A stretch of 64,000 bases of DNA from Geosiphon pyriformis uo1 (lineage: Eukaryota > Fungi > Glomeromycota): positions 1 to 64,000 of the forward strand of contig JAAOMT010000608.1 in NCBI GenBank assembly GCA_016748015.1. Reading direction: 5' to 3'. Below, one piece after another: positions 22,487 through 45,594 of this stretch; positions within the stretch are counted from its first letter, which is position 1; each line of letters opens with the position of its first letter. Below the pieces are notes generated by a model. The model made no database searches. It had not been told where the DNA came from and was given only the letters and a program-made list of their open reading frames with translations. The position numbers and the translations under genes were made by a program.

Positions 22487-23685
22487 CAGTGTGTTGCGAA
22501 AAAATTGGACAGAAAAAAATAATCGCTGTGCTTTATCCAATGCACCAAAAGATATAAATTATATACCATTAGAAAGCTAAAAAGCACATAATTTTATTAA
22601 AAAAAATTTATTATGATATTCTTTCCCCCTTATTCGCAATTATCATCTCACAACGGTGTTTCATTGATCCCACTAACCCAATTAGAGTAGATCGGGGAAT
22701 ATTTGGCCACTCTTCCTTCATAAACTGATCTAATTCATCCCGATTTTTGGGCATACGCTTCTCCGCATTCCTTTTCACAATAGCCCATAAGTTTTCAATG
22801 AGATTCAAGTCAGGACTATTAGAAGGCCAAGCTATAACTTCAGGCATATTCTCTTGAAGAAAGGCTTTGGCTAGATGGCTTGTGTGCTTTGGGTTATTGT
22901 CCTGTTGAAACCGCCACTCATTCCCTAACATTCCTCTTATCTCAGGTAAATTTTCACGTATAATTTCTACATAGAACTTAGCATCCATTATTTGGGTAAA
23001 ACAAAATAAACTTACCTTTTCTTTCTCATAAAAACCACCCCACGCCATAATTTTTGTTCGATCTTTTGGTATAGCACGAGTTGGTCGCTGGCCTTTATAC
23101 CAACGTTCTACTGTATTTCGGAATAGACAAAAAGCTGTTTCATCCGAAAAAACAGTTCTTTTCCAATTATCATTCAGATTTTCTTGAGCCCACTTTACAC
23201 AATTTTCCTTGTGGAGATTGGTGAGCATTGGAGTTGCCAAAGGCAAGTCTTTTTTATATCCATGATTAATTAAATGCCTTTGGATAGTACTAGGAGAAAC
23301 GTCTACATTATTTTTTGCTAATTTTATTTTCAAAGTCCTCAAAGATATTGAAGAATCTCGACGGAGGTATTGTCCTAATGTTCGCATCTCCTTTAATTTT
23401 TCGCGGCCGACCATTTCCACCCGCATGCTCCACAATTCCTGTTTTTTCGAGTTTTTTAAGGATATTATAGATAGTAAAGTGTGGTATATTTGTTCGCTGT
23501 TTTATTTCAGTTGCGTCTCGCATCCCTTCATTCCAAAAATATAATACGGTTTGGCGCTGTGTTTCTTGCTTGGAAGGTAGCATTGTGCAAGAAAATTTCT
23601 AAAAAAATTATTAGCCTAATTCAACCGCCACAAACTAACTAAAATTGGTTAAACTGTATCAAGTTTTGTGATGAGCAACACATTG
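22487..23685 (-). mobile_element. Tc1/mariner DNA transposon (Tc1, DD34E), about 1.2 kb
   Basis: TA flanks at 22485-22486 and 23686-23687. Imperfect TIRs CAGTGTGTTGC... / CAATGTGTTGC...; internal transposase. Confidence 0.9.
22611..23583 (-). pseudogene. Frameshifted Tc1 transposase
   Basis: N-terminal HTH and GRPRK motif (ORF 23308-23583), frameshift near 23385, then FSDE, FQQDNNPKH and SPDLNLIEN, with 34 residues between the second D and the E. Confidence 0.9.
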
Positions 23686-33484: not shown

Positions 33485-35026
33485 TTAAATATCCCACCAT
33501 CCAGAATTGTCATTATACGATCGATGAGAATCACTCCCATCCCTTTCGTCGCCCTCCTCTCCCTCGCCCGACTCACGCAGCATATCTTGCAAATCCGCTT
33601 CATCATTTTGAAGGTCTTGCAAAATTTGCTCTATCCTAGCTTGCAGTTGTACCCGCCTATGAGACTCTTTGCGAAGCAGAAACTTCTGTCTTTGAATCTG
33701 TAAATTTTCTTGTGTCAGTTTATCCTCCAATTCAAATAATTGTTCATGTAAAACCCTATTTTTCTGCTCTTCCTCATCAAGTTTTTCTTTGTCTTGGATT
33801 TTCATCTGTTGATGTACCTCAATTATTTGTTTTTGCAGTTCAAACATTTGAAGGAATCGGCCAATATTTCTACTTTCCCGTTCCGAATGTTCAGATGATT
33901 CATCGCTACCACCGTCAAGCTCTAGTTGCAACTCGAGTCGTTCAATGGCTTGATGATATCTTGGTATTTTTGAAGAAAGTGGATGATTTTCCTTGGATGC
34001 ATATTGTGAAGCTTCCGAATCGTCTAAAATTTATTAAGATTAGTGAGTGTTGAGTTTAGTAAAATACATATCAAGTATAACATATAGCTTACCCATAACA
34101 ACTTTTCCTTTGCCCTTATGAGCAAAAGCTGATTGAGAGTTAAGTGTGAGCTCTTTCAACGTGGAATTTGATTGCCACGTATCACTGCTATTAGCAGTCG
34201 AAACTCCTAAAAGGCTGGTTGTCGGGGATAATTCTTTCTTATTTAAGAACGCTGAAAGTTGCTTTGTTGCCACACTGGCAATTTCTTCATCATTCTTGCC
34301 AACAAAGCCAATTTTTCCTCCATCTTGATCTGTAAATGTGACGCCAATCACTGAAATTACATCAAAATTTTTTTCATTCGCCTCCAAATACAAAGATTTA
34401 TATTTCCTTGCTTGGTCTATAACTTTATTCAACTTCTTTCCTGGTCTTATGGTATTTTGAACTACCTTCACCTCGACAACAGCAAATACGCCCGACCCAT
34501 TACTTAAAATAAGATCGTTACGTCCAAATTGGGGCATATTTTCAACGGGATGCCAATCAAATTCATACAGATATTGAAAACCAGGAAGATGAGTTTCGGA
34601 ATACTTCAACAGCCTATCTTGCCATTCAATTTCATTAGCACTCACAGCCTTTTGTTTAATTTTAAAACTTTCCCATCGTTGCCTTTCTTGTAAATCTCTG
34701 GCAACAATTTTCTCGTGGACAGCATAAGTCTCACAGGTCAGTTTCAAAGCAGCATTGATTATTTCCGTTGTCTGATTTGGCAACCAGCTATATATAACAC
34801 CACGTTCAACGATTTTTTTTTTAAGATAGTCTGATAGAAAACATTGGTCGTATGTTTGGGCGAGTTCTTCTTTGAGAAGAAAGGTTTCGAAGTTGGATAA
34901 GTTCTCAAATTGTTTAGGAATATATTGAAATGTGGTTTTATCTTGATCAAGAGCTTCAAATAAGAGTTTTAATTTTTGCGAGATATCTTTATTCCTTGGT
35001 TTTCTTTCCATATTTGAGGTGTCCAT
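33485..35026 (-). CDS. PD-(D/E)xK restriction-endonuclease-fold protein (NucS/RecB-like motifs) with C-terminal coiled coil
   Basis: Exon 35026-34093, intron 34092-34024, exon 34023-33485 in frame. Motifs NEIEWQD, GRNDLIL, FAVVEVK, VIDQARKY; heptad-rich tail and acidic C-terminus. Confidence 0.75.
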
Positions 35027-35882
35027 AATGATGGCGTAATATTTCAATAGAAAAACATTGCATTCCCAGCGCTTCCTTTTATTAAATTCAGATTGGATGA
35101 AATATAGCCATGATTTTCACACAGGAGTGTACAGTTCTGGCGAGACGGTCCTTGAACGCAGTGAACTTGCCTTATAAGGAAATATTAAATAAGACGAACA
35201 CACTAAATCTCGGGTATTCTAACTTTACACCGGGAATAGAAACTTTGACACTGGTTTTTCTAAACTCGGAACGAGGAAACTTGGTAAAACTCCACATTGA
35301 CCCACTCACAAACATGATTTCCGGAGATTGACTCCATTAATTGCCGAGAAGGGCAGTGAAACCATAACCAAAATATCATACAAAAATGTAAAATGGCAAA
35401 ACAAGGAGCCTATAAAAAAATGATGAAGTCTGGAGAATTACATGACTTCCAAATATGGGTGGTGTGCTCATTGTTTCTCGTCCGTTCCTTAAACAGACAA
35501 TAATTAATAAACAATATTATGTCATTTTGTGGTTGGCGCTGATTATTTTGACAACATATGACTAAAATTTCTTGGGAGGCAGTTTTACAAACAGAGTTTC
35601 TATAAAGAATTGGTATCTCATTATGAAACTTTTGATTGTTTATTTAATTTTGAATTCAAACCTGGAACCTAAACACTTTTGTACCATTCAATGTTAGTTT
35701 TCTTTGGAATTTAGGAATAAGATATTTTAAAAATGATGTCAAGGTTAAGATTCTAAACTCTTTCAGGTTGAGAATCTCGATACATCTATTAATATATATT
35801 CGTTGAAATGTTATTCACAAATTTATACATACTTTGGCTTTGAGTTCAAAGTGTTCAATATTAAAAATGGATTCTCTGGGAA

Positions 35883-36899
35883 TCAATCAAACTCGTCAAA
35901 TTCAAATTTAGCTTCTTCAAACTGTTCCCGCTTAAGATCATCCAAAATATTCTGAAGCTGTTGTTTCAACCCTGCCCTATGTAAACATTCTTTTTCAAGC
36001 AACATTCGGTGTTTCTTAATTTGAATATTCTTCTCCAAGAGTAGGTTATTCTTCGCCTGCAACTGGCTCTGTAGATTAAAATTTTCCAGTTTTTGTTCTA
36101 GGAGCTGATCCTTTAAATCAAAATTGAGCTGACTGTGAATCGATTCTATTTTCAATATTGGGGCTGCTTTCGCTACCATTTTTGCTACAAATTTATCCTT
36201 CTTGTTAACAAATCGAACAGTTCCTCTGTCTTCATCAGTAAAAATCATACCAATTACACAAACAACCTCTGAATTACTTTTATGTGTTTGGGTAAATTTG
36301 GTTCTATATCCTTCCATTTTTAGGGTAGCTTTTTTAACCTTTTCTGTGACCTTATACCCATTGGTTTGTTTTACTACCACAATAACAAAGATCCCCATGC
36401 CATCGGTAAAGATCAAATTGTCTCCCAACCCTGTAGAATCCGTAAGCCGATCAAAATTATAAAGGAGTTCTAAACCGGGGAGGTAATCACATGAATTTTT
36501 AATCAATATATCTTGCCAAACTCCTGCTGGACTCTTTTTGATTTTTTTTCGGGGGATCTTTTTCCATTGTAGTCGTTCTTGCGTATCAATTGCAACAATT
36601 TTTGGGTGTTTGATATAAAGAATTTCGCGGGTGAGTTTTATAGCGGCCTTGGTTACAAGGTCAACTTTATATGAGGCCCATTTGTATGTAATGGTGTCAT
36701 TTTCGAGATAATTTGGTTCAATAAATCCTGGCAGAAATTCTTCTTGTGCAAAGTCCTTTTTAAATTCCGGGAAACCATCCAAGGCTATAAATGTATAATT
36801 AAAGAAATTTAGACCTTGCTGCAAAGCTTTGAAAAGTAGATTGAGCTTGTACAAAGTTTCTTCGCGAATGACAATCTTTTGGAGTGTCATTGCGTCCAT
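35883..36899 (-). CDS. Intronless paralog of the adjacent nuclease with degenerate active site, plus coiled coil
   Basis: 338-aa intact ORF collinear with the neighbour (KLNLLFKAL/KLKLLFEAL, KIVAIDTQERLQW/KIVARDLQERQRW, VIGMIFTDEDRG/VIGVTFTDQDGG). Catalytic positions read GDNLIF, VIVVVK, KMEGY. Confidence 0.75.
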   Translation of the reverse strand: MDAMTLQKIVIREETLYKLNLLFKALQQGLNFFNYTFIALDGFPEFKKDFAQEEFLPGFIEPNYLENDTITYKWASYKVDLVTKAAIKLTREILYIKHPKIVAIDTQERLQWKKIPRKKIKKSPAGVWQDILIKNSCDYLPGLELLYNFDRLTDSTGLGDNLIFTDGMGIFVIVVVKQTNGYKVTEKVKKATLKMEGYRTKFTQTHKSNSEVVCVIGMIFTDEDRGTVRFVNKKDKFVAKMVAKAAPILKIESIHSQLNFDLKDQLLEQKLENFNLQSQLQAKNNLLLEKNIQIKKHRMLLEKECLHRAGLKQQLQNILDDLKREQFEEAKFEFDEFD

Positions 36900-37195
36900 T
36901 GTGGGAAAATTGGCAACTATCAGGTACGAAAGATTGAGTCTACTGAAAAGATGAAAACAATTTTAGCCGGTAATAAATAAAGGATGAAAAACCTAGTTTT
37001 TAGCCTTTTTTAAACAAGCAAATCCCTAACAACTTTGATCTCCAAACTGAATGTAGCTACCATTGGCTTTTAGCAATGATATATTTTTGCGAAAAAATCT
37101 TTGGATAGTGATGTAATTACGAATAAATAATGATTAATTGAGAGTTGAAGGTGATAATGATCAAGCCAAAGTAAGAAAGTGGTTGGAGGTAACAG

Positions 37196-37219
37196 ATGAT
37201 GATGATGATGATGATGATG

Positions 37220-37274
<55 letters not shown>

Positions 37275-37314
37275 TAATAATAATAATAATAATAATATAA
37301 TAATAATAATAATA

Positions 37315-37374
<60 letters not shown>
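37196..37374. repeat. Compound microsatellite (GAT)n-(AAT)n
   Basis: Directly visible trinucleotide array. Confidence 0.95.
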
Positions 37375-37377
<3 letters not shown>

Positions 37378-38573
37378 CCCGACTATGTGTATAAGAGAGT
37401 AATTTAAACTTTTAAAAAACAATATTTTCTTTAAAAGATTCAATATTTTTTTTACAACCACATTTATCAAATATTAAAATAATATTTATAAAATCAGATA
37501 ATTAGAAGTAGAATCTTCAAGAACATAATAATTAGGGTATAAAATATTGAATTAAAAAATATTCATTTAAAAAATACCAATAAATTATTTTAGATTATTT
37601 AGTATTGATATAGAAACATATTAAATGTTAAAAAATTTTGTATAAAAACAGTTTTTATATATTGAATTCAATTGAAAAAAATTAGTTAATTTAACAAAAA
37701 AATTGAAGAATAAAAAATAGGCTATTATTATTTTTTAGCCTGAAATAAATTTCAACTATTGTAAAAGTTAAAAAAATTATTGCATTTTTGAAAACATTCT
37801 AAACTATTTGCGATTTTAAGGAAACAACCATAAATAAAAGGTTAACCGTTTTTAATGCCATCATCAATCTTTCGGGTAACTTTGCTCATTTAAAAGAAAA
37901 ATTAAAAAGAAATTCTAATCAAAAAACATCTTTTGATTTTTCCAGCACAATAACTTATAAGATAAAAAAAACACATTTAAATATAGAGTCCTTTAATACA
38001 TTGGAGATAACGCGTTTTGTACCTTTTTCTACCCACAAAACTTAAATGGCCAAGGTATGAGTTTAAAAAACTTGAAAATTTTAACCGAGAATAAATTAAA
38101 AGGGTTATAAATCGTAACGAGTCACATTATAAAATTCTTTGGGTAAATGTGCCTGAAATTACAGGGCAATTGAAAGAGACCTAAAAAATCAATAAAAACT
38201 CAGCTCCTTGTAAACTTCAAATTTCAAATAGAGTTTTTAATTTTCTTTAGTCACTTGTGTTTTGAATATCTTTGGATAATTTTTTTGGATTGTTTCATGT
38301 GACCTATTTATTTTAATTCTATAACTGTACTTTTTTTGGTATTCATTATTATTAATTTCTTCTTTAGAATTACCACACTTTTTGAAAAATGGTTCACAAA
38401 TCAATATCATCTTAAACAGCAATGACCACGCGATGTTTACATTAGAGAAATATTTTAATTAATTTCTGAACTTTTAATAAATTATTCATAAATCTCTTTA
38501 AAAAGTAATATTATCTCACCAAATTTGTTTTCATCAAATGCGGTACACATCAAAATAATTGCTTTGTGATATA

Positions 38574-40690: not shown

Positions 40691-42811
40691 ATGGCATCAT
40701 CAAATGAATCACACTCACCTCAAGTTCAGCACCAATCTTCGACACATATGATGAAGACCACGAGGTCAGGAAGACCTTTTGTCAAGGTTTGTTGATGAAA
40801 GGTCTAATATTTTATTGATTGATATTTTGGGAAGGATTTCGAAATAATTCCCAGTTTAGATTTATGACTTGAACTTCATATCGCTCATTTCCACTCATAC
40901 TTCGATTCGACTCCTTTGTTTGAACAGGATATTCATGATTTATTCTCGACCTTAGTTGTATCACTACCCATGGACACCCATCGACACTTATTTCGTACTT
41001 ATCCAAACACTTTTACAACTGAAGAGGCTGTTTTGAATTTGGGCTCTTTGAAATTCACTCAATCTAATCGTTCTCCAGATCCCAAAGATCCTTCAAGAAT
41101 TATAACTACCACTACTACGACTACATTTAGCATGACCAAAGATATGGCAAAGAGTGTTTGTCAAACATTTATGGACGCAAAGCTTTTCGAGCATTCTTCA
41201 GATACTACATCAAGAATATTTCGAGACAAAAATTTATATTGCCTCACACCGAAGGGTGTACACATTCTTGAGAAGTTTGTAGTACAAAATGGAATAATCG
41301 CAAACAATCTGACACGAATGTTCACATCTCAACTAGCACCAATCAAACTATATTACTTGGAAAGAAATCCTGATAATGATGCTTTATTGCTGAATAAGTC
41401 GGTAATTGATGAAATATTTCGGAGATTTGTTGGCCCACGACCAAATGATATCACACCGCATCAAAAAGATAAAGACAGTGAAAAGGATACTGTTTCAGAT
41501 GCTGCATCAAGTTCATCTGCAGAAAAAGGTGATCGTAATTTGGGAATTGAATTAAAGGATCGACAGCAAAATCATAGAGTTTTTCGTCAAACCTTTTATG
41601 GTCTACCAGCGTTAGATTGGATATGTGATTTTACTACAGCAATTGCTCGTGAGGAGGCAAGCAAAATTGCCAACGAATTTTTAAGATTAGGTCTCATTGA
41701 ACCTGTTCCTGATAAAAAAATTGAGAAAGATAGTCATCATGAACCGAGACTTTCACGGAGCACATTGTATAAAATAACCAGTGAAGGACGACGTGTTGCG
41801 GGCTGGGATCAAGTAATTTCACAACCAATCCCTATTAATCCAGAAAAATTCGAAAGAAATGGAATACGTGGGATGCTTAGTATTGCGCATATGAACAAAT
41901 CGGACAATTCAAGAAGTAGGAATGTTCAATTATCATCATCACTTGATTCTGAAAGTGGAAGTCATCTTCATAATGCTACAATCAAAGGGCATCGACCTCG
42001 AGGTAATTCTGTTAGTGAAAGACATTTTGAAGGGCACTCAAGTCATCACGAATCAAATACAAAAAAACTTTCCCAGATTCTTGAAGATCTAACACTTCGA
42101 TCCCATTTTATGGACTTCTTGAAAGCGAATTTTTGTGAAGAGAACTTACTATTTCTCTTGGACATTCAACAATTTAAAGCAAAACATTCCCATAATTTGG
42201 ATGAGAATGGTGAACCGAAAGGTGAAGAGGAGCGGCAATCATTAATCGCAGACTCTTTTCGAATCTACAATAATTTCTTAGCACCTGCATCAGTCAATGA
42301 ACTCAATATTGATTATGGAATGCGACATCAAATGATTCAATACATGACATCAATCATGTCTCATAAGCGAGAAATCGAGAAATTAGACTCGGAGCATCTC
42401 TCCAATGTTCCGGGCTCGTCTCAAACCCAGGCAACTCCGATCACTGTTCGCTTATATGATGAAATTCAAGACACAATCTTTCGATTAATGGCAACGGATT
42501 CTGTTCCAAAATTCAGCAAAACAGATATATATCTAACCACTGTATTCGGACGACCCGGTCATGAAAATGGAGTAACACTTACAAAAAAGAATAGTATACT
42601 GAGTTCGCATGGTAAGAATGAAACCAAAGCAGCTGCACGACACAAGAAGGACTCTTCCAATGGATCGAGTGGATCAGACGGAACGAAAGAAACGCCTAGA
42701 ATTATTACAACAAAGCCTTCGGTTGCTACTATTATGACAACAAAGCCTTCGGTTGCTACTGTTATGACTACAAAAACGAATGGTATTGTAGTAAACGGTC
42801 AAGCGTTATGA
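40691..42811 (+). CDS. flbA: Regulator of G-protein signalling, FlbA/Sst2 type (DEP-DEP-RGS)
   Basis: Exon 40691-40786, intron 40787-40927, exon 40928-42811. Motifs GRPFVKDIHDLFSTL, SQ/TQSNRSPDPKDPSRIITTTTTTTFSM, LTPKG; RGS domain NFCEENLLF, FLAPASVNELNI, FRLMATDSVPKF. Confidence 0.93.
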
Positions 42812-44187: not shown

Positions 44188-45594
44188 TCAATACATTTTG
44201 GGATATAGAATTGAAGGCCTCAGGTTACATTTCCCGAAAGTGACCCCAAAGTAAGGCCCTAAAGGGGAGCCTTCAAAGTCTGTTGAATAATCAGATGTTC
44301 CAACGTTACAATTCTGTAATTAAATAACTTTTAGAAAATTGTCTCCAAAATAAAAAGCACCTTTCTAAATTTTTTACTTACATGATTTTCCTCACCAGTA
44401 GAACTATCAGCTAAACACATATAAATCGGTAAATTGAGGTCGTGGGTTCCCATATACGTAACTCCCTGCCCTCTTTCATGTTCACAATCACAATTTTGAT
44501 TAGCAATCCAAATTTCTACTCCATGATGTCGGAAATATGGAGTTGGTAAGAACAATCTTGAAATATAATCGTTTGTGTGTGTAATTCGATATACTAGTAT
44601 AGTACTTTCGATAAGTTGGGCAAATTCAGGTGTACCTATTCGAGGTTGACCAAATGTATACGTTTCTACAATAAAATTCGGGTTAAGCCAATCTTGAAAT
44701 TCTCCCCCGTTTAGTTTTAGCTGAAATGATAAAGCGGCAAGAACAGCGTAGACTATCAAATAAAATTTGGTGTTTTAAGAATTGAATTTGAAGCCTTTGA
44801 TTGATCATGAAAGAAACTCTACAAAGGGTAGGAATTTCACACGTACCACCACCAACACCATGCCCTGTGAATATAATTCGGTCGTAATACGGACTATGTC
44901 TAATAGGGTATAAAATACTCTCGATTTTAGTGAAAAGAGCAGGTAACACCTCTTGAATATCGCCATTCCAAAGAAAATCAACTTTAGCATTTGGAACTTG
45001 AGCCATTCTAAAGTATAATGAACTATATCGTTCAATCATTGTACGTTGGGCCAATTGATATGGCGTGTATTTCTCCCCTCTGAAATATGCTATTATGCTC
45101 CCCTCTTTGGCTACGACGTCGGCTGAGGATATAAAAAAAAACTCATGAAAAGAATGCATGATATTAAACAGTGAAAAGAGAGAAACACTCTATGCCAAAC
45201 CTTTGATATCACGATTACTTAAATACTTTCCAATTTCATTTTCGTGACGACAGTACCCATAATTTGCATATTTTGCTATTTTCGAAATTTTGAGTATCAA
45301 ATGCCAGTTGGTTATATCTAACTCCCGATCATTTATTCTTTTCTGAATACGATTCTGTGCATTATTCTTGAATTGAGAAATATTCGTAGAATTGTCCTCA
45401 ATCGAAAAATAATTTGAAATTTTTTTTTTATTACTTAAATTCTTAAAGTTCACAATATATGTATGACTCAAATAATAGATCTTTAGAATTTTCCACATAG
45501 AACCAAAGACTATGAAGAATATTATCATCTGAAATATCAAAGATTTTCGTCGCTCTCTAGAGATATATGTAGTAAAATTATAAATTAGCTTCAT
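44188..45594 (-). CDS. Lipase class 3-like protein with N-terminal anchor, lacking catalytic Ser and His (GHGVGG; GSPLGPY)
   Basis: Exons about 45594-45201, 45122-44847, 44752-44382 and 44313-44188. Motifs KYANYGYC, IIAYFRG, IIFTGHGVGG, TFGQPRIG, RITHTNDYIS, FRHHGVEIW, LGPYFG. Confidence 0.85.

Follow-up and report, generated by a model that had tools for sequence, protein, structure and literature searches.

A predicted PD-(D/E)xK nuclease and its degenerate tandem paralog in Geosiphon pyriformis, members of an undescribed nuclease family expanded in Glomeromycotina and Endogonales

Two neighbouring genes, here termed UP and DOWN, occupy positions 33485-36899 of a 64,000-nucleotide stretch from the genome of the fungus Geosiphon pyriformis (contig JAAOMT010000608.1, positions 1 to 64,000; assembly GCA_016748015.1, 128 Mb in 792 contigs), which is referred to as the window. 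The window is AT-rich with a G+C content of about 29%, and the 4.4-kb locus that contains the two genes is single-copy DNA within the assembly. According to the list of open reading frames (ORFs) and the sequence itself, both genes lie on the minus strand in a head-to-tail arrangement. DOWN is predicted to encode an intact nuclease of the PD-(D/E)xK superfamily, and UP a degenerate copy of this protein. The locus comprises the following features, for which structural models were obtained by AlphaFold2 (AF2).

35883..36899, minus strand: UP gene, an intronless 338-aa ORF (stop codon included) that encodes the degenerate, putative pseudo-nuclease paralog; identical to library protein P0005
36156..36539, minus strand: UP nuclease-like core, aa 121-248; Asp160, Lys177 and Tyr198 kept, Val175 and Lys194 in place of the ExK Glu and the Gln, helix Glu lost
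35889..36149, minus strand: UP C-terminus, one long helix of coiled-coil type (aa 251-337) with an acidic-aromatic tail (AF2 predicted local distance difference test, pLDDT, about 90)
35027..35882, no strand: intergenic spacer of 856 nt from the UP stop codon to the DOWN start codon, with no ORF bridging both genes
34093..35026, minus strand: DOWN exon 1, 311 codons plus 1 nt, with the ATG at 35026; N-terminal family-specific domain and intact PD-(D/E)xK core
34250..34645, minus strand: DOWN nuclease core, aa 128-259, based on AF2 secondary-structure order, VIA-align matches and the conservation census
34631-34633, 34514-34516 and 34472-34474, minus strand: DOWN codons for E132, D171 and E185, conserved/catalytic positions in the core
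34466-34468, 34412-34414 and 34400-34402, minus strand: DOWN codons for K187, Q205 and Y209, conserved/catalytic positions in the core
34024..34092, minus strand: predicted DOWN intron of 69 nt, phase 1, with GTAAGC donor, TTTTAG acceptor and a CTAAT branch-like site, read from the sequence
33485..34023, minus strand: DOWN exon 2, in frame from 34021 with 178 aa and a stop codon; linker, predicted coiled coil (about 33572-33859) and an acidic tail with WWDI as its last residues

The frames of the two DOWN exons agree with the listed ORFs, and the predicted full-length product comprises 490 aa. In every search, fold and complex prediction the two exons were handled as separate pieces; the coiled coil of exon 2 is one that we infer from its sequence. 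The public protein collection contains UP as well as two further paralogs from the same genome (on contigs C673 and C596), and no counterpart of DOWN. The sole intact nuclease of the family in G. pyriformis thus seems to be unannotated in the public gene set. Both genes end in acidic-aromatic C-termini, encoded on the minus strand at 33485-33520 (DOWN, ...NSGWWDI) and 35886-35915 (UP, ...FEFDEFD). The end of the DOWN tail conforms to [WFY]xx[LIV], the loose consensus of Atg8-interaction motifs, which is a pattern match only. A long trinucleotide microsatellite of the ATT/ATC type lies upstream of UP (37117-37470 of the window), about 220 nt from its start codon.

As proposed in a preliminary description of this DNA, the two same-strand genes are paralogs that can be aligned over their length. 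UP matches DOWN exon 1 with 34% identity over 257 aa (BLASTP, E 4e-30), and the tails are similarly related, with 32% identity over 74 aa between UP aa 250-323 and DOWN exon 2 (E 3e-7). In the best full-length maximum-likelihood tree UP groups with DOWN as its sister, at weak support (74/71), and the end branches of 2.15 for UP and 0.88 for DOWN correspond to an approximately 2.4-fold faster evolution of UP. A tree based on the core only places DOWN with Ambispora proteins (Shimodaira-Hasegawa-like approximate likelihood ratio test, 87) and leaves the position of UP unresolved. These sequences are most economically read as the result of a tandem duplication at the locus, after which UP evolved faster; an origin of the pair in an older duplication is possible.

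The alignment of 147 relatives, which was used for the conservation census and for the structural model of DOWN, yields the family motif E...GD...ExK...QxxxY. In the numbering of DOWN, the aligned relatives share E132 in 115, D171 in 116, E185 in 125, K187 in 130, Q205 in 113 and Y209 in 111 cases, and DOWN carries all six residues. The earlier claim that the downstream copy keeps every catalytic element accordingly stands, but the conserved helix Glu is the first E of NEIEWQD (E132) and not the second (E134), a position occupied by E in 33 of the 147 relatives. In contrast, the claim that the upstream copy has lost all four elements was overstated. UP lacks three residues, the helix Glu on alpha1, the ExK Glu (replaced by Val175) and the Gln of QxxxY (replaced by Lys194), but retains Asp160, Lys177 and Tyr198. 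In alignments obtained by MAFFT and by hidden Markov model, the Asp within GLGDNLIF of UP corresponds to the Asp of the family GxGD, followed by a one-residue insertion. Of 30 strongly conserved family columns, 16 are kept in UP, structural glycines and core hydrophobic residues among them. Within the PD-(D/E)xK superfamily, losing the metal-binding acidic residue of the (D/E)xK motif normally abolishes catalysis. Since it is this Glu that UP has lost, the protein is predicted from its sequence to be catalytically impaired and is probably dead.

Structural modeling indicated that the two proteins share the core fold of the superfamily. The AF2 model of DOWN exon 1, based on the 147-row alignment, reached a pLDDT of 85.1 and a predicted template-modelling score of 0.81, and that of UP, based on an 89-row alignment, a pLDDT of 87.6. 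Both models display the succession alpha1, beta1-3, a long alpha2, beta4-5 and alpha3, which is the PD-(D/E)xK order. In the model of DOWN, E132 is positioned on alpha1, D171 opens beta2 (171-175), E185 and K187 reside on beta3 (180-187), and Q205 and Y209 on alpha2. A Foldseek search against the PDB had no result at E<=0.001, but PD-(D/E)xK nucleases make up nearly all of the weak rows at its top, namely RecE, HincII, cap-snatching endonucleases, SfsA, MGME1, SduA, Cas4, XisH, CinB and Dna2. When compared with 48,161 chains by VIA-align, DOWN was most similar to NucS (2vld, Z 7.9, root-mean-square deviation 2.7, 90 aligned residues) and an XisH-like protein (2okf, Z 7.2), followed by Sen15 (2gw6, Z 6.7) and Hjc (1gef, Z 6.5), with Hje (1ob8, Z 6.0), HsdR, SduA, Dna2 and Cas4-type proteins as well as 3if0 (Z 5.5) at lower ranks. 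Similarly, the best matches of UP were Hjc (1gef, Z 6.9, 102 aligned residues), NucS (2vld, Z 6.5) and Hje (1ob8, Z 6.3), and its 87-residue C-terminal helix (aa 251-337) matched dimeric coiled coils (Z 6.2-6.7). An Atlas feature search pointed to SduA_C (0.86) and a fold search to UPF0102 (template-modelling score 0.61). The restriction-endonuclease fold that had been suggested for both proteins is thus predicted by the AF2 models, with top VIA-align matches of PD-(D/E)xK or splicing-endonuclease type at Z 5-7.9. Because the one-sided list of matches, the topology and the placement of the motif residues agree, we regard the assignment of both modeled proteins to the PD-(D/E)xK core fold as solid.

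Despite the lost residues, UP is an intact ORF of 338 aa, as noted before. In simulations starting from the UP sequence, 0.05 neutral substitutions per site left the ORF open in 4% of the runs and 0.1 did so in 0.2%, and a random frame of 338 codons at the base composition of the window would be open with a probability of about 5e-13. The synonymous sites of UP and DOWN are close to saturation (proportion of synonymous differences, pS, 0.70), so that the ratio of nonsynonymous to synonymous substitution rates (dN/dS) between the two genes is uninformative. The proposed retention of the dead copy is therefore backed by the rapid loss of a neutral ORF in the simulations, but not by dN/dS against DOWN. 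The simulations, the near-saturated pS, the retained conserved columns and the confidently predicted fold together strongly indicate, at the level of sequence, that the UP ORF is held open by purifying selection and that UP is a pseudo-nuclease rather than a pseudogene.

An exhaustive profile search recovered 191 proteins at E<=1e-3, 67 of them at E<=1e-10; a word-index protein search returned two Ambispora proteins and nothing more. The relatives are mainly proteins of Glomeromycotina and Endogonales, in addition to short bacterial proteins. Members in the Glomeromycotina were identified in Ambispora gerdemannii, A. leptoticha, Funneliformis geosporum, Glomus cerebriforme, Dentiscutata erythropus, Scutellospora calospora, Acaulospora morrowiae, A. 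colombiana and Rhizophagus clarus, and in the Endogonales in Jimgerdemannia flammicorona. Within Glomeromycotina the family is widespread by vertical descent and forms orthologous clades, and the nearest relatives of DOWN are the Ambispora proteins with 37% identity. A further match comes from the transcriptome of the jakobid Stygiella incarcerata, reflecting either a family that reaches beyond the fungi or contamination. The short members (110-190 aa) are bacterial or metagenomic, and a distant one is annotated as 'Holliday junction resolvase-like predicted endonuclease'. The gene neighbourhoods of the bacterial relatives are inconsistent, one being located beside McrBC and another beside an ABC transporter.

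Scans of UP and DOWN against Pfam, NCBIfam, PADLOC and PHROGs yielded no significant match (for Pfam none at E<=1), and neither a single protein nor the 147-row profile found a match in sequence searches of the PDB. Among the 147 relatives, Pfam matches were exclusively sub-threshold and included NERD (8 members), PDDEXK_9 (4), UPF0102 (2) and SduA_C; the best relatives stayed below the gathering cut-off for NERD (19.4 vs 22.1 bits) as well as for UPF0102 (19.1 vs 23.6 bits). By these sequence comparisons, UP and DOWN belong to a predicted nuclease family outside the current models of the four collections, which is an undescribed family within the well-known PD-(D/E)xK superfamily, expanded in Glomeromycotina and Endogonales.

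The genome of G. pyriformis contains five members of the family. The D-E-K triad is complete in DOWN alone, and the remaining four, all of them intact ORFs, are degenerate, with the triad states D,V,K in UP and three different combinations in the other copies. These three are solo genes on other contigs, unlinked to DOWN. They are given below together with the dead paralogs of the two Ambispora species.

C673:301859-302713 (L003 ORF 1399-2256): G. pyriformis paralog, intact ORF of about 285-295 aa, triad N,E,M
C596:10279-11139 (L004 ORF 1045-1932): G. pyriformis paralog, intact ORF of about 285-295 aa, triad Q,G,A
C640 (L009 ORF 5316-6170): G. pyriformis paralog, intact ORF of about 285-295 aa, triad G,F,K
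L012:5745-6470: Ambispora gerdemannii dead paralog
L013:2698-3417: Ambispora leptoticha dead paralog

The dead Ambispora lineage (P0012 and P0058) is present in both species with the same exchanges, Asp to Val, Glu to Phe and Lys to Asp, and is nested on a long branch within an active clade in the trees. Its two proteins share 66.7% identity at a dN/dS of 0.37 over 211 codons; the active Ambispora proteins that were compared share 45-46% between the species, their orthology being uncertain. The annotated model of P0058 omits part of an uninterrupted ORF. Active and dead Ambispora genes reside on different contigs, and no second copy was found near either within 2.5-7 kb of flank. More generally, the loci L005, L007, L008, L012 and L013 contain a single copy each within the available flank of 2.5-10 kb, and one copy each is present at the Glomus and Funneliformis loci. 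The sole tandem case elsewhere is P0011 of Rhizophagus clarus (L006:10001-12282), in which two tandem units, both degenerate, are part of one gene model. Across the family, about 45 of 159 aligned domains are without the D-E-K triad, some being truncated or conservatively changed. Degenerate and intact domains also occur within one polypeptide: the metagenomic protein P0013 combines a first domain with an E to Q exchange and an intact second one, and the S. incarcerata transcript P0062 has three domains of which the middle one alone is intact. What recurs is thus that active and dead copies are found together within a genome or a polypeptide. Tandem linkage does not recur, and the expectation that active/dead tandem pairs would be found repeatedly failed at the other loci checked and among the unlinked paralogs of the same genome.

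PD-(D/E)xK nucleases of the NucS/Hjc type are dimeric, and duplication of a dimeric enzyme often gives rise to active/inactive heteromers, as is the case for XPF-ERCC1, Mus81-Eme1 and the Sen subunits. Dead paralogs as partners have been treated as a general principle (PMC5201418), as has the transition from homomer to heteromer after duplication (bioRxiv 10.1101/2024.02.12.579783). With reasonable, by no means full, confidence we favour a reading in which DOWN is a metal-dependent PD-(D/E)xK nuclease, UP is its selected tandem pseudo-nuclease, and the non-catalytic copies assemble with themselves or with DOWN. DOWN would consist of a family-specific N-terminal domain, a NucS/Hjc-like core and the long C-terminal coiled coil of the Archaeosporales-type members, and the metal-dependent phosphodiesterase activity is predicted from its motif and modeled fold. 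In UP, as the tandem duplicate of DOWN, the core fold has been retained along with the N-terminal domain and coiled coil, and the ExK Glu and two further residues have been lost. We propose the assembly of non-catalytic copies since enzymes of this type are dimeric and the coiled coils of UP and DOWN are homologous; moreover, Archaeosporales-type tails align loosely among active and dead paralogs, including DOWN exon 2 with the Ambispora tails. Through the coiled coil, the non-catalytic copies would most likely self-assemble or join the single catalytic copy, with DOWN supplying catalysis, and their role would be that of a scaffold, a substrate-binding subunit or a regulator, comparable to Eme1, ERCC1, Sen15 and Sen54 beside their catalytic partners. 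By analogy with these systems, homo- or hetero-oligomers mediated by the coiled coil with DOWN as the catalyst are the favoured arrangement, and heterodimerisation of UP and DOWN is plausible. A complex prediction with DOWN exon 1, DOWN exon 2 and UP scored 0.42, a value that was also obtained with an unrelated protein as chain 1 and is hence not specific.

Several points weigh against this proposal. Foldseek, as mentioned, returned no significant structural match, and the VIA-align Z scores below 8, taken alone, would be moderate and not decisive. The gene model of DOWN, which is absent from the public library, is based on splice sites read from the sequence. UP keeps the Asp, Lys and Tyr of the motif, so residual or altered activity is possible. 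Finally, most of the degenerate paralogs show no linkage to an active copy, an arrangement that would fit an independent non-catalytic function equally well. The latter is the main rival explanation, in which UP and the other degenerate paralogs have taken on a role of their own, such as nucleic-acid binding or scaffolding, and the tandem arrangement is the footprint of a duplication. It is suggested by the three additional degenerate paralogs that stand solo on other contigs, by the Ambispora dead paralogs, which are conserved at the dN/dS given above yet have no active copy nearby, and by R. clarus P0011 with its two degenerate units and no intact one. However, each sampled genome with a dead copy (Geosiphon and both Ambispora) has an intact one too, P0013 and P0062 fuse intact with degenerate domains, and the coiled-coil tails of UP and DOWN can still be aligned. 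We regard an independent role as rather unlikely, though well worth considering. That UP is a decaying pseudogene which is still open by chance might be suspected from its long branch (2.15 vs 0.88) and its three lost conserved residues; but an ORF surviving as rarely as in the neutral simulations and as improbable as a random open frame, a fold predicted at a pLDDT of 87.6 and the retention of structural glycines and core hydrophobic residues render this explanation most improbable.

The preliminary description had viewed the pair as a conflict module, with DOWN as a toxic nuclease and UP as the linked antidote or regulator, in the form of a poison-antidote element, an allorecognition/cell-death module or a defence pair. 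There is a fungal precedent for a killer nuclease in SPOK of Podospora, in which the exchange K240A in the PD-(D/E)xK domain abolishes killing (PMC6660238). The two genes are also tightly linked, on the same strand and 856 nt apart, and one bacterial relative adjoins McrBC. On the other hand, the tandem pairing is not recurrent, another bacterial relative is located beside an ABC transporter and not a defence system, and no PADLOC defence model matches the window proteins at a meaningful score. Neither UP nor DOWN contains a kinase or another known antidote part. The locus is single-copy and lies outside any repeated element, with no signature of repeats or mobile elements, and the broad vertical spread of the family over Glomeromycotina with orthologous clades argues in the same direction. 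We consider a conflict module very unlikely; the toxin-antidote reading of the UP-DOWN pair finds no support, and the pair provides no evidence for such an element. It might be speculated that the coiled coils join UP and DOWN into a heteromer, with the pseudo-nuclease gating or targeting the sole catalytic nuclease of the genome, and that the family, in which many copies have been inactivated independently, serves intragenomic or inter-nuclear conflict, the dead paralogs acting as antidotes or decoys. This version appears just as doubtful; if true, it would represent a nuclease-based incompatibility, drive or anti-parasite system in a coenocytic, multinucleate arbuscular mycorrhizal (AM) fungus.

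Returning to the proposed nuclease with pseudo-nuclease partners, the closest known systems are NucS/EndoMS and Hjc/Hje, which are the best structural matches of UP and DOWN and share the placement of the Glu on alpha1, the Asp at the start of beta2 and the ExK on beta3. The QxxxY of DOWN is located on alpha2, as in NucS, RecB and HsdR. In contrast to NucS and Hjc, the window proteins have no sequence match in Pfam or the PDB and possess an N-terminal domain of their own as well as a C-terminal coiled coil, and the family of DOWN has a eukaryotic distribution (Mucoromycota). The two-domain architecture of NucS, which includes an N-terminal DNA-binding domain, was not found in DOWN, of which residues 131-239 alone align to residues 126-230 of 2vld. 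NERD, UPF0102 (YraN), PDDEXK_9 and SduA_C of Shedu are the sole Pfam families touched by relatives, all below threshold; no relative reaches a curated cut-off, and UP and DOWN themselves have no match. XPF-ERCC1, Mus81-Eme1 and Sen2/Sen34-Sen15/Sen54 resemble the proposed arrangement in that, on a restriction-endonuclease-like or related fold, a duplicated subunit without catalysis is kept as a structural or substrate-binding partner, and Sen15 and archaeal structural subunits of the splicing endonuclease are among the fold matches of DOWN (2gw6, Z 6.7; 3if0, Z 5.5). However, no homology of these proteins to UP and DOWN was found beyond the superfamily, and an interaction between UP and DOWN is a proposal.

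Among fungal proteins, SPOK of Podospora requires a PD-(D/E)XK domain with a QxxxY-type motif for spore killing, and a kinase confers resistance (PMC6660238). SPOK and the proteins studied here have in common their fungal origin and the combination of a coiled coil with a PD-(D/E)XK domain carrying a QxxxY-type motif. SPOK is, however, a single polypeptide that carries its coiled coil at the N-terminus and also includes a kinase, whereas UP and DOWN are two genes with C-terminal coiled coils and no kinase. The sole kinase-bearing relative, the nuclease-kinase 'fusion' P0016 of Funneliformis geosporum (L008:10001-15541), consists of two blocks 3.8 kb apart that probably represent two merged gene models. 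AM fungi are known to carry lineage-specific domains of restriction-endonuclease fold in Crinkler (CRN)-like proteins, as described for Rhizophagus (PMC6131194). The N-terminal header of Crinkler proteins (LFLAK / HVLVxxP) was not recovered: no Pfam match to the Crinkler family was obtained among the 147 relatives, and the conserved LLFxAL segment at the N-terminus lies within helix 11-27 of the DOWN model. A hydrophobic N-terminal signal sequence was not obvious in UP or DOWN by inspection, no predictor being applied. The family of UP and DOWN is thus set apart from CRN proteins by the Pfam scan, and not by direct sequence comparison with the CR-REase domains.

In the UP/DOWN family, catalytically degenerate paralogs appear to have arisen repeatedly and to have been kept by selection. 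The family might therefore serve as a clean natural case in which to follow the change of duplicated dimeric nucleases into active/inactive assemblies. It also offers a candidate for a DNA or RNA transaction that is specific to this lineage, in fungi with a poorly understood nuclear genetics.

Some additional observations concern the surroundings of the family genes. A class-I S-adenosylmethionine (SAM) methyltransferase (Methyltransf_23/31/11) is located 1-6 kb from the family gene at L005:4235-5590 and L008:2540-3888, a neighbour common to the loci of Ambispora gerdemannii and Funneliformis geosporum; a tblastx search for such a gene in the window found none. Elsewhere in the window, three further coding regions were identified.

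22611-23435, minus strand: ORF of a Tc1/mariner-type transposase (DDE_3, E 3.7e-15; HTH_Tnp_Tc3_2, E 4.3e-10)
40916-42811, plus strand: single ORF for a 631-aa regulator of G-protein signalling that carries DEP and RGS domains
44331-45159, minus strand: Lipase class 3 (Lipase_3) fragments across two adjoining ORFs, probably one intron-bearing gene

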